Part shown: positions 26,701 to 35,700 of the stretch, in pieces | Layout: each line of letters starts with the position of its first letter | Numbering within the stretch: the first letter of the stretch is position 1 | Source of the DNA: Styela clava | Lineage: Eukaryota | Direction of reading: 5' to 3' | NCBI RefSeq assembly: GCF_964204865.1 | Contig: NC_135251.1 | Coordinates: forward strand, 14,136,001-14,200,000 | Length of the DNA stretch: 64,000 nucleotides | The notes under the pieces: generated by a model | What the model saw: only the letters and a program-made list of their open reading frames with translations | What the model was told of the DNA's origin: nothing | Database searches by the model: none | Program-made: the position numbers and the translations under genes

Positions 26701-29700
26701 GAGAGGTGGTTATAGAGGCAATTATAAAGCAATTTTGACCATAACAATAACATCACAACCGCCAAGAATAACTAAACGATCAACAGCTAGGATCGATTTG
26801 TATCTTGTAATAGCTGCCGAATTTTCTGGCAACAGTCTGCATATTATATAATGTACATACTTACCAATGTAAAAATTTTTGTAAAACTTGTCATCAAAGT
26901 TTTTTATTTTAGTGCTATCGGTTGACAATTTTGTTCCATTTGCTGCTGTAGTTGGCTGAGAAGTGTTTGAGGTCGCTGAAGTAAAGATGTCTTCGTGTTT
27001 GGATATCCTGATAACACAATATAGAAATGTGGCTATTCTCAATAGGCGGTGCTTTGTCAATAAATGATGCTTGTTTGAAAGAATTCATTTCCCATGAAAG
27101 AATAAGCTACATTTTTCTTCATTTTTGAAAAGATCACACTACATTAAAATGCTCATTGTTGTAATAAGTGATATATGCTATTTTTAAAGTTCGCTTAAAC
27201 CTTTTTAAAAGGGCCGCAACATCTGAATTGGTGTTGTTTCAACGACCATCGCCTCCTGAAATCCGAAATTCCCGATTTGGAGAGACGAATCCTCTTATAG
27301 TGTGCATACCTTTTAGGGGGCATATTTTGAATCCGAACGCTATATAATAACTTGTTTAACCTTTTCAAATCTAGCCCAAGTGACAATTTTGCGTTACAAA
27401 TTAAGAACCAGTATCGATTGGTATACTGAACTAATGTCTTTATAACTCAAGTGGTAAATTACCAATATGACAGCCACCAATCGGTCATTATATATATGAC
27501 ATGTCCTGCCAAAACAATCAGAATGAAAATCGTCATCAAAATTACACTTGCTCCGGATCGGAAATATTCAATATACACTTTTCCTTCAACATCCCCATGC
27601 TTCACTTCTTCGGGTTCTATGGCTTGGAATTTAGTCTGCAACACACAAACAGATATTTTTATAGGATATAATTATATCTTTCGTCATTTCAAAGCTCCTA
27701 AAACCTAAAGCATATTGATGTATTTTTCCTTATAAACAAGAGAGCATGGCTCATGTTCATACCACTGGTTCTCAACCAGTGGGTCATGGCCCTCTGCTGG
27801 GCCACAGGAACATTTCCAGGTGGACCACAAACCTATTAAAAATTGCTATAGTTGTTGATAAAGTTAGTTAAATTCGATGGACGTAGCAATGAATGATGCT
27901 GTTTTTGTTACAGGGTGGTAAATTTTCACCTAATTAACAATAAAGTGAAAGTGTGTATTTTCGCAGAAAGATTCTATGTTTTTCTTGAAATTTTTCCCGG
28001 CATAAAAAAGTTAGTGAGCCAGAAAATTTTGTGCACCGAAAATGGGTCACGAAAGAAAAAAAGGTTGAGAACCACTGGTTTATACAGTATATATAGGAAA
28101 TTATGAGAAAAACCATGTATATAAAAGTACATGCATTCTCCGGTTTTGCTGACACAATTAAATGAGATATTGCAGATGCACGATGTCAATACAGGCATTT
28201 AAGAGAACACTATGCCTCAAGCAATTGCAATAGATAATATATATGCCCAGCGCATTAGCATCTGTTGTCAAAAATACTGCAAACAATTATGTTTATACAT
28301 CACTGTTTGTTACAAAATAATATGTCTTCTATTTGAATCAAACGGGAAGTAATTCCATGATTTTTACGCAATAACATCAGCTTGCTATATTATTACAACC
28401 ATAACAAAATGCTACATTACCATGTCAGGGATTTCAATGGACGATATAATTGGATCCCGGTGCATAGCTTGATTGGAATTATTTTGTTTTGGTTGGAAGG
28501 ATATCATCAAGGAAGCTCTACGTTTAGTTTGAACTGAGCCTTCCATGGAATTTCCATTATGAGATCCCAATGAACTGAATGACTTGTTACGGTTGACGCG
28601 AGCATGAGGCATTTTTGTGGCTTCTTCGGTGTTCACGTTTTCAATAAATTCTGAAAGATGAACAAGAGAGCTAGCTTAAATATATGGGATTGACACAAAT
28701 TCCAAAACGCCGTAGTACGGGTGCGCAATCTGTTACAGTGGGCTACCAGTACCAGACGTCACGATGTCATGAAAACGTGGAAGACAGCCATCACGATGTC
28801 ATATGAACGTGTTCTCATAACTAAATCTTATACATCGCATTGTGATAGCCTTCTAGCAAAAAATACAACCTTTAACCACTGAATATTTCAAAGCAATTGA
28901 TCTGTTAGTGAGTGAGAAAAGCAATTTTTTCTTAAGATAACAGGATGAACAACAATAACACGATAACAAAACGATGCACAGGTCCATTTCATGTCCAATA
29001 AGTCTGGAACAATTCCAACTATATTTTATCGCCAGATGATCATCGCTGTTTTACATGTAATGTAATGCATTTAACGCTTATTATTAGCAGTTATAGATAA
29101 TGGGTTATGGGCCATCATGCTGGACCAGATGAGACACAGAGGAAACAAAATAAGGTAAAACCGAGATTCAGATTTAGCTGAATACTAGCGCAAAAATGTA
29201 TCAGCAGAAGCATATAAAACACCGTTTAGCAAGCTCCGATACGCTGTCTCTTCCGTCGCTAAATGTGGGGCAAAATCAAATCCTTCGGACTCTAGTTTGC
29301 TGTAATTTCCTTTTCGGGACACTTTACCCTGGCAATTGCAAAAATAGTACATATGTGCATTGTATTTGTTTTACTTCATCTACAAATAATCTCAACCTGC
29401 ATGTTTCAGCAATGGCTGACTGACAATTAGAGGTTTTGTAGCCACCGCAATGCCAGCAAAATTCCAGCCAAATGTTTTAAGCATTGTACCGGGTGTCATA
29501 CCAGGGTGTGCCTTGAATCATGAAATGAGGAACAGAAGATATATTTACATTATTACACTATTTATCCTGGATTCATGGTAAATATGAATTTACCACTGAA
29601 TAGAGGACTAACATGAGAACCTAACGCGACAAAAATTTTGGTGCTTCCCTGCGATTTTTTGAACTCTTTTGGGTTCGAATATTGGGAATTGTAGAAAAAT

Positions 29701-32700: not shown

Positions 32701-35700
32701 AAAACTTTAATATTAGACTCGAAATACTTCGGATTTAGTATTAAAAAATCAATGGTTTCATGGTCAACTACTATTATAGAACACGTAGTGGACCTATGGA
32801 TCATTTTTACTTATCGATCTTTAGATCGGTAAGTATGTTGATAGGTATTTGTTGTATTTGACACAAAATATAGGATTGGTAAATAGGCTATTAGCTGGAA
32901 ACTAATCGAAACAATCCAGTTCGGATTTGCAGAATTCTTCATAAAAGTATTTCTTCGAGTAGTAATTCAACGACGACGTGGGGAGTTGGCTATTGTTTTC
33001 TACATTTTTGATATTGGCTGAAAACTAATCGAAACAATCCAGTTCGGGTTTGCAGAATTTTTCGAATCGAAACCGCAGCGACCGATATTCTCGTTATTAT
33101 TATTATTATGTTGCTGTTGTTGGTCTTTGACACATATTAAAAAACAGCTTTTCTCGAAGATTACTGGGCCTATTGCTTTGAAATTTGTAGTGGTTTATAA
33201 ATTTTTTGCCAGAAGGCTATTACTTTTTTATTCCAAATTTTCCCTGTATTACTTTTTAATCAAGTGAACGCGGTTTTTAATCCGCCATGCGAACCAACAA
33301 AAGTTCAAAAAATCGCAGGGAAGCATCAAAATTTCTTTGTTGCGTTGAGTTCTCATGTCAGTCCTCTATTCATTGGTAAATTCATATTTTTGCCCCCGAG
33401 ACCCGAAAAGTTCAAAAAAATCGGTTATCTTACCAAAATTTTCAACTTTTTTACAATTCCCAATATTAGAACCCAAAAGAGTTCGAAAAATCGCAGGGAA
33501 GCACCAAAATTTCTTTGTTGCGTTGAGTTCTCATGTTAGTGTTCTATTCATTGGTAAATTCATATTTTTGCCCCCAAGACTGGAAAAGTTTAAAAAAATC
33601 CGTTATCTTACCAAAATTTTCAATTTTTTTACAATGCCCAATATTCGAACCCAAAAAAGTTAAAAAAATCGCAGGAAAGCACCAAAATTTCTTTGTTGCA
33701 TTGAGTTCTCATGTCAGTCCTCTATTCATTGGTAAATTCATATTTTTGCCCCCGAGACCGGAAAAGTTTAAAAAAATCGGTTATCTTACCAAAATTTTCA
33801 ATTTTTTCACAATTCCCAATATTCAAACCCAAAAAAGTTCAAAAAATCGCTGGAAAGCACCAAAATTTCTTTGTTGCATTGAGTTCTCATGTTAGTCCTC
33901 TATTCATTGGTAAATTCATATTTTTGCCCCCGAACCGGAAAAGTTCAAAAAAATCGGTTATCTTACGAAAATTTTCAACTTTTTTACAATTCCCAATATT
34001 TAGAACCCAAAAAAGTTCGAAAAATCGCAGGAAAGCACCAAAATTTCTTTGTTGCATTGAGTTCTCATGTTAGTCCTCTATTCATTGGTAAATTCTTTTT
34101 TTGCCCCCGAGACCGGAAAAGTTCAAAAAAATCGGTTATCTTACCAAAATTTTCATTTTTTTTACAATGCCCAATATTCGAACCCAAAAAAGTTTGAAAA
34201 ATTGCAATGAAGCACCAAAATTTCTTTGTTGCATTGAGTTCTCATGTTAGTCCTCTGTTCATTGGTAAATTCATATTTTTGCCCCCGAGACCGGAAAAGT
34301 TCAAAAAATCAGTTATCTTACCAAAATTTTCAACTTTTTTGAAATCCCAATATTAGAACCCAAAAAAGTTCGAAAAATCGCAGGGAAGCACCAAATTTTC
34401 TTTATTGCGTTGAGTTCTCATGTCAGTCCTCTATTCATTGGTAAATTCATATTTTTGCCCCCAAGACCGGAAAAGTTCAAAAAAATCGGTTATCTTACCA
34501 AAATTTTCAATTTTTTTACAATGCCCAATATTCGAACCAAAAAAGTTAAAAAAATCGCAGGAAAGCACCAAAATTTCTTTGTTGTGTTGAGTTCTCATGT
34601 CAGTCCTCTATTCATTGGTAAATTCATATTTTTGCCCCCGAGACCGGAAAAGTTTAAAAAATTCGGTTATCTTAACAAAATTTTCAATTTTTTCCCAATT
34701 CCCAATATTCAAACCCAAAAAAGTTCAAAAAATCGCAGGGAAGCACCAAAATTTCTTTGTTGCGTTGAGTTCTCATGTTAGTGTTCTATTCATTGGTAAA
34801 TTCATATTTTTGCCCCCGAGACCCGAAAAGTTCAAAAAAATCGGTTATCTTACCAAAATTTTCAACTTTTTTTACAATTCCCAATATTAGAACCCAAAAA
34901 AGTTCGAAAAATCGCAGGGAAGCACCAAAATTTATTTGTTGCGTTGAGTTCTCATGTCAGTCCTAAATATAAATCCACCCATAGCGTGATGCCCAAACTA
35001 TTAGTTTACGTAGTAGGTACATTTCATTTGACGCGGAAACACTATAATATGAAATTCGGGCATTTAAATTAGATATTTGGCTGGTATTTGGCTGGCGTGA
35101 CAGTGGTGGTTTTGTGATATATATTGTATAAATTAATGCATTGTCGAGATCTGCAACGTGCGTCGTATTTTATATGTGTTTTATATTCTATTTAGATTTT
35201 TGTCATGAATGTCATATGCTGAAAATGAGGTATAGTTCAAATATATGTACACAAATGTAGAACTTCCAGCTATGGAATATACTTTTATTTCTATTACAGA
35301 TCATTGAATTTGCTAAATATTCTGAATATAATCAGATAAAATCAATGTAGTAACTATCAACTATCAATCAAGTAATAACTATTACCTTAGAAAGGACCAT
35401 TATTTCATCAGCTCTCTTCAGCAAATGCATTTGATGTGTAACAAGTATTCGAAGCTGTATATTAAATCAAATAAATATATATCATAACTTAATCTGATAA
35501 CTTGGTTGAATTGGGAAAAATCTATTCTACAAACCCATACTTTGAGCCTAACGCAAAGCGGTTGAAGTAGAACTTTTTGCTACCTCATAACATAGTTTTA
35601 TGTTCTATTATTTCATAGTATTATTAATCACAAATGTAACAAAACGTACAACCCAATGAAAGTGTTGGCAGTTGGCGTAGCATGGCGCTAAGCGTTAGAG

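Follow-up and report, generated by a model that had tools for sequence, protein, structure and literature searches.

Three features define Rehavkus elements: a target-site duplication (TSD) of 9 bp, a PHD finger, and tandem repeats near the terminal inverted repeat (TIR); their hosts are arthropods and annelids (PMC6446971, Table 1). In Tribolium they are foldback transposons with satellite DNAs (satDNAs) in their inverted termini, comprising up to 50 monomers and arms of more than 11 kb (10.1101/2024.12.02.626372 = PMC12581902); Rehavkus-1_TC and Rehavkus-3_TC carry TCsat23/TfSat15, TfSat23, and TfSat25 in this position (10.1101/2024.12.02.626372). Here we analyze a nested palindrome of inverted 178-bp satellite arrays that interrupts an intron of an ABCC4-like gene in a 64,000-nucleotide stretch of contig NC_135251.1 (positions 14,136,001–14,200,000; hereafter the window, in whose numbering coordinates are given). 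A sequence-only reading of this DNA had proposed an undescribed foldback-like element; the claim of novelty fails, since satDNA-bearing foldback transposons of the Mutator-type/Rehavkus kind have been published (10.1101/2024.12.02.626372 = PMC12581902; Tetris, PMC4079207). The kind of element is already known, and no new kind is present here.

The interval 29441–35107 is very probably one copy of a non-autonomous, presumably trans-mobilized, cut-and-paste DNA transposon of the foldback type, for which a Rehavkus/Mutator-like affiliation is the best fit. Assignment to the foldback structural class is made with high confidence: the element has long inverted arms built of tandem subrepeats, the number of which varies between copies and between arms, and its mobility is evident from its occurrence at unrelated loci, from TSDs, and from an empty site. 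Three structural hallmarks of Rehavkus are present, i.e. the 9-bp TSD, the PHD finger (in relatives of the element), and tandem repeats adjoining the TIRs, and with respect to superfamily we favor a Rehavkus/Mutator-like placement with moderate confidence.

Boundaries, copies, and host intron

A genome search with two monomers returned matches arranged as plus-then-minus pairs at the C17, C14, C4, and C18 loci, and at other loci. In BLAST comparisons, C14, C17, and C4 each share with the window both terminal regions and the 2,532-bp core over its full length, at 94–100% identity; they share none of the DNA outside 29441–35107. The four copies (the window copy, C2, and those at C14, C17, and C4) thus defined lie at unrelated loci. 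All but one of the satellite matches listed (the exception being C6:3014101) fall inside intervals delimited by left and right terminal regions or adjoin a single terminus. The genome-wide mapping of the monomer favors a single element, with inverted phase-matched pairs, the same termini, TSDs, and, in relatives, transposase-bearing cores; recurrence of the architecture at three other loci likewise supports the earlier proposal of one mobile satellite-carrying foldback-like element rather than two insertions. The mobile unit (29441–35107, 5,667 bp) and its TSD are composed as follows.

29432–29440, no strand: left copy of the 9-bp TSD, GGTTTTGTA, the single copy kept in the empty-site contig described below.
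29441–29473, plus strand: 5′ TIR, GCCACCGCAATGCCAGCAAAATTCCAGCCAAAT, pairing with 35075–35107, with at most one difference across all copies of both subfamilies.
29441–29579, plus strand: left terminal region, 139 bp, unique apart from the TIR.
29580–30757, plus strand: arm A, 6.6 units of the 178-bp satellite (Tandem Repeats Finder, TRF; 90% matches).
30758–33289, no strand: non-coding core, 2,532 bp, with five pieces of a ~305-bp repeat and other repeat debris.
31634–31938, plus strand: full-length ~305-bp interspersed repeat, one end of which bears a palindrome with a 12-bp stem.
33290–34964, minus strand: arm B, 9.4 units of the same satellite, inverted, with a 355-bp dimer period in addition (TRF, 91% matches).
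34965–35107, plus strand: right terminal region, 143 bp, with the 3′ TIR (35075–35107, ...ATTTGGCTGGTATTTGGCTGGCGTGACAGTGGT) at its end.
35108–35116, no strand: right copy of the 9-bp TSD, GGTTTTGTG, identical to the left copy at 8 of 9 bases.

The part shared among the copies opens with GCCACCGCAATGCC at 29441 and closes with ...GACAGTGGT at 35107 (BLAST between loci), such that the limits of 29396–35230 proposed from the sequence alone were 45 bp too far out on the left and 123 bp too far out on the right. The left terminal region is 96–99% identical at C14, C17, and C4, and 92–94% identical at C9 and C18; the right terminal region is 98–100% identical at C14, C17, and C4. The true TIR outside the arrays is an imperfect inverted repeat of only ~33 bp. 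Contrary to the subterminal inverted repeats that had been proposed, the two subterminal regions interior to this TIR are non-homologous, as are the inner flanks of the arrays.

Perfect 9-bp TSDs flank the copies at C17 (GATACATAC) and C4 (TTTTTTGGC). Elements of the P type make TSDs of 7–8 bp, and hAT elements make TSDs of 8 bp. A TSD of 8 bp, as in hAT, P, or Zisupton-like elements, was considered for the present family and rejected: the first of the nine bases differs among copies yet always matches the other flank, which excludes the shorter duplication. The C14 copy begins 3 bp past the apparent right terminus of a related family (...TTTTGCTAGCATTTTGCTTATATGACAGTGGCAA, C14:8517580–8517650), which suggests insertion beside another element, or a rearrangement with another element.

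Contigs from public runs under the same species label (Logan contigs, Hi-C reads) were compared with 29300–35250. A 427-nt contig from run X2 passes from 29300–29440 straight into 35117–35250, without the element and one copy of the TSD, and with two single-nucleotide polymorphisms; further contigs end exactly at 29440, 35107 (Logan), and 35117. The empty-site contig therefore indicates that the insertion is polymorphic or heterozygous and that the boundaries are right, and it identifies 29394–29440 and 35117–35230 as host DNA. The host features are the following.

29332–35387, minus strand: host intron of the ABCC4-like gene copy A (translations and GT/AG sites, by eye; predicted splice sites).
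29394–29431, no strand: left part of a ~161-bp host stretch specific to this gene copy (paralog alignment), contiguous with 35117–35230 in the empty-site contig.
35117–35230, no strand: right part of the copy-specific host stretch, with a self-match only genome-wide, joined to 29440 in the empty allele.

The interrupted gene encodes an ABCC-type transporter on the minus strand (LSGGQ/Walker B at 35943–36410), and the insertion lies between two exons, read by eye, with a predicted donor near 35387 and a predicted acceptor near 29332. A paralogous gene copy is present on the opposite strand of the window at ~50.5–58.1 kb (minus strand; window self-BLAST). Alignment with this paralog stops at 29393 and restarts at 35231, so that 29394–35230 is missing in the paralog, consistent with the reported absence of the palindrome from the paralog intron. 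The outermost layer, previously interpreted as decayed TIRs, is instead host DNA: it is present in the empty allele, its right-hand piece is single-copy, and its inverted repeat (ACCTGCATGTTTCAGCAATG/ACCTCATTTTCAGCATATG) is weak, with a score reached by 5 of 1000 shuffles. Because the outermost inverted repeat is contained within the empty-site allele, and because a genome-wide search found no second copy of 35117–35235 (self-match only), we assign it to the host intron.

An old miniature inverted-repeat transposable element was considered for this outer shell and rejected on the same two properties, the single-copy right-hand piece and the marginal inverted repeat, and the shell was left as host intron DNA. 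The 161-bp stretch formed by 29394–29440 and 35117–35230 is present in the window gene copy and its empty allele and is not found in the paralog intron. It has short, marginally significant inverted ends located exactly at the indel boundaries, which may reflect a very old small insertion, or chance.

Satellite arms and core

TRF analysis recovers the two opposed 178-bp arrays of 6.6 and 9.4 units that had been described from the sequence, and a repeat finder pairs the arms in registers of up to 667 nt with 91% complementarity. Arm A spans monomer positions 1 to 110 and arm B spans positions 25 to 93; these ends are offset by 24 and 17 nt, and the arms differ by 2.8 units, in agreement with the near-equal phase ends and the difference of about three units noted before. 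The phase ends (A, 1 to 110; B, 25 to 93) are identical in all four young copies. Across these copies arm A comprises 6.6, 12.6, 14.6, and 24.6 units, and arm B comprises 9.4, 14.4, 26.4, and 28.4 units, i.e. the arrays vary by whole numbers of monomers only.

Of 133 monomers, 127 have their nearest neighbor in an arm of their own type, whether within their own copy or in a different one, and between copies the outer monomers A01, B01, and B02 show orthology (98–99% identity). The nearest-neighbor pattern therefore implies that arms descend together with their element and that changes arise inside them; exchange between arms A and B is, as judged from these comparisons, little.

The core of the window copy contains no open reading frame above 76 amino acids in a scan of that copy. 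Among the four copies the core differs by 15–32 substitutions per ~2,530 bp (98.7–99.4% identity). As the sequence-only reading had it, the core holds five pieces of one repeat, given the putative Helentron label HINE1 there, and here defined as a ~305-bp interspersed repeat (31031–31090; 31189–31469, minus strand; 31634–31944; 32292–32589; 32804–32855). The sequence-only reading also named putative HINE2 pieces and a putative hAT fragment in the core. More than 3,400 first-look candidates for this repeat were found genome-wide, the scored copies being 91–96% identical with sharp ends. Within the window it is confined to the transposon core, and contig depth in the RNA-like run X7 is very high on it. 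Internal tandem repeats are known from Helentron-type elements. A Helentron/HINE carrier would give arrays delimited by Helentron termini, no TSD, and insertion between T and T; it was rejected in the present case, the arrays being bounded by TIR-bearing termini in a unit with a 9-bp TSD.

The proposed potential to form double-stranded RNA holds in silico: in the 667-nt register of the arms, 624 pairs are predicted, with a free energy of −974 kcal/mol compared with about −170 kcal/mol for shuffled sequences. Taken at the sequence level, the comparisons of copies and alleles demonstrate insertion of the cut-and-paste type, recent activity, and whole-monomer changes within each arm.

Relatives, partner transposase, and rival explanations

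Genome searches with both terminal regions identified a second subfamily, with 11 or more copies of 2.9 to 20 kb, whose outermost ~33 bp at either end match those of the window element (at most one difference). Perfect 9-bp TSDs flank most of these copies (at least six perfect 9-mers). The sister-subfamily monomer is also 178 bp long and is 73% identical to the window monomer. Blocks conserved between the monomers of the two subfamilies comprise the palindrome TTCGAAC-N8-GTTCGAA and CTTTCCGGTCTCGGGGGCAAA, both of which may be candidate protein-binding sites. Pure foldbacks that lack a core, with arms A and B directly adjoining, occur at C19:12213311–12217738, C8, C10:17553–22003, C1:31024539–31025776, and C16:2245881–2246793; they are 1.2–4.4 kb in size, and their outer phases are fixed and their inner phases variable.

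Large members of the sister subfamily have coding cores, and autonomous-size relatives are located at C6:6846471–6862475 (16 kb), C9:8042751–8062969 (20 kb), and C14:21735290–21749841 (14.5 kb). Five consecutive frames in the C6 relative correspond to one open frame of 1,757 amino acids in the C9 copy, which combines a PHD finger, a DDE transposase, an Ulp1/SENP-like protease, and a UCH (USP-type) protease. The C9 element sequence was read in its N-terminal half. The PHD finger (PF00628; E = 6e-7 in the C6 copy and 5.5e-6 in the intact C9 frame) is carried by the autonomous relatives and is lacking from the window copy, and Pfam also recognizes the UCH domain. The window family looks active, as judged from copies that are ~99% identical, the polymorphic intronic insertion, and the open 1,757-amino acid partner frame.

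Genome-wide, transposases of this type form at least 10 more paralogous families, 27–49% identical to the query, with many open frames of 1,000–1,950 amino acids and near-identical duplicate copies (e.g. C18:14234456–14237716, C1:9184663–9187923, C14:20097337–20099526, and C8:13761510–13763699). These transposase-bearing elements seem to have radiated extensively in this genome, with recent activity.

The middle 754 residues of the transposase match no Pfam family; a phmmer search of the transposase against PDB sequences gave no match, and a profile built from an alignment of 40 homologs gave noise only against the same set. The 754-residue segment has 552 relatives among 1.8 billion representatives, many of which continue into a UCH domain, one of which carries Peptidase_C48, and one of which has a sub-threshold MULE match; a search for homologous proteins returned six unnamed ENA entries. 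A D..D..CxxH..E pattern is kept in the alignment of 40 relatives. The AlphaFold model of residues 1–460 (predicted local distance difference test score, pLDDT, 83.7) best matches the IS256-family transposase ISCth4 (Z = 11.6, 225 residues aligned), followed by the P element transposase (Z = 10.1), Hermes (Z = 9.5), and retroviral integrases (Z ~8). Residues 470–754 (pLDDT 83.9) match SENP2 and Ulp1 (E = 7e-9, TM-score 0.60/0.75). No description of a transposase with both protease types was found in the literature searched.

The features of the partner bear on the best surviving alternative, that the element is a foldback derivative of another superfamily, i.e. Zisupton/KDZ, P (Galileo-like), or hAT. 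A partner with an Ulp1-like protease and a PHD finger is in keeping with this possibility, as are the second and third structural matches to the P element transposase and Hermes and the failure of the Pfam MULE model to recognize the transposase; yet the best structural match is to the IS256 family, bacterial relatives of Mutator, and Pfam detects neither a SWIM domain in the transposase nor a THAP domain in its N-terminal 861 residues. Zisupton resembles the partner in its large multi-domain transposase including an Ulp1-like SUMO protease, but its TSD is 8 bp (PMC12730594), compared with 9 bp here. The KDZ domain, PF18758, which defines Zisupton (PMC9297572), gave no match on the transposase pieces or the 40 homologs at E values up to 0.05–10, and no match anywhere in a genome-wide search that was uninformative, its controls being equally silent. 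Given the 9-bp TSD and the undetected KDZ domain, the element is filed as foldback, Rehavkus/Mutator-like, rather than Zisupton, and derivation from one of the other superfamilies is unlikely.

Several observations weigh against the Rehavkus/Mutator-like, trans-mobilized foldback interpretation. The structural lead of IS256 over the P element and hAT transposases is only 1.5–2 Z units. MULE PF10551 does not match the transposase and matches just one of the 40 homologs, weakly (E = 0.0014), and a genome-wide PF10551 search found many canonical MULEs, none of them at partner-family loci; these searches yielded no sequence-level tie of the transposase to a named superfamily. The C14 copy has no TSD in its flanks. 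Array lengths are known from the assembly alone, the RNA-like run has almost no depth over the arms, and mobilization in trans is deduced from the shared termini only.

In-situ inverted duplication (palindrome formation) or an assembly artifact is far less probable than a different superfamily, and we consider it highly improbable. Assembly is difficult where tandem arrays form long inverted repeats, and the reads examined were Logan contigs and Hi-C reads only; against this, there are four copies with unrelated flanks and TSDs in three of them, perfect 9-bp TSDs in most of the at least 11 related copies, and independent short-read contigs that break at the element ends, one of which has the precise empty site. 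In-situ inverted duplication as such was rejected, given that the architecture is common to the copies, that TSDs are present, and that an empty site exists. The weakest explanation, two independent array-carrying insertions (e.g. non-autonomous Helentrons/HINEs with central tandem repeats) in head-to-head orientation, separated by debris acquired later, can appeal to the abundant, palindrome-ended interspersed repeat of which five pieces lie in the core, but it has a negligible probability given that the order of left terminus, arm A, core, arm B, and right terminus recurs at three other loci with the same phase ends and a near-identical core, that a single 9-bp TSD surrounds the whole unit, that in the empty allele the unit is missing in its entirety, and that the 305-bp repeat never adjoins the arrays.

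In this interpretation the unit is organized, from the outside in, as a ~33-bp imperfect TIR, ~110 bp of end-specific subterminal sequence, inward-pointing 178-bp arrays, and a 2.5-kb non-coding core. The element, which encodes nothing itself, inserted into the ABCC4-like intron with creation of the 9-bp TSD, and was most likely moved in trans by the 1,757-amino acid transposase of the sister subfamily, which has the same terminal ~33 bp. The conserved monomer blocks may serve as extra transposase-binding sites, a role that has been proposed for other foldbacks (Liu and Wessler 2017, as cited in 10.1101/2024.12.02.626372). Inherited with the element, the arms lengthen or shorten by whole monomers within each arm, possibly through unequal exchange or replication slippage. 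The inserted arms could affect splicing and could form double-stranded RNA or a cruciform.

The locus represents a clean, fully resolved case of a transposon that carries and spreads a satellite: nearly all listed arrays are within elements, the arm ends are fixed, and changes involve whole monomers only. Because the family looks active, it is suited to studies of satellite seeding, of a possible stimulation of transposition by the tandem repeats of foldback arms, and of the consequences of a perfect-register hairpin of 0.7–1.1 kb for host-intron splicing or small-RNA production.

Comparison with known foldback systems

The FB and Galileo elements of Drosophila are similar to the window element with respect to their long inverted arms of subrepeats, the copy number of which is variable between copies and arms. 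The FB TSD is 9 bp; the FB subrepeats, at 10–31 bp, are much shorter than the 178-bp units observed here. Galileo differs in having a THAP-type P transposase and a 7-bp TSD (PMC3573991), neither of which is seen in the present family.

Tetris of D. virilis is a non-autonomous foldback with ~200-bp tandem repeats (the TIR-220 satellite) in its long arms, and it also resembles the window element in its non-coding middle domain, 8–10-bp TSDs, few complete copies, and proposed Mutator affiliation (PMC4079207). In contrast to Tetris, for which no autonomous partner was found, the present family has autonomous-size relatives with an open transposase frame. The Tetris repeats also form free satDNA arrays of kilobase size, whereas nearly all of the arrays listed here are within elements.

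The likeness to Rehavkus comprises the 9-bp TSD, the PHD-finger transposase, the non-autonomous copies, and a satellite that is almost confined to the element. The partner here differs in carrying Ulp1-like and UCH proteases, which were not found described for Rehavkus in the literature searched. Rehavkus has been reported from arthropods and annelids only (PMC6446971), and the likeness of the window element to it is seen in structural hallmarks. These comparisons raise the possibility, which we put forward tentatively, of a distinct, active Rehavkus/Mutator-related clade beyond the reach of Pfam models, in which a transposase would be fused to Ulp1-type and USP/UCH-type proteases and a PHD finger, and in which the arms would act as arrays of transposase-binding sites, recognizable by the TTCGAAC-N8-GTTCGAA palindrome and CTTTCCGGTCTCGGGGGCAAA. 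If this holds, and if the host is a sea squirt, the clade would be a distinct one outside the arthropod and annelid range reported for Rehavkus.

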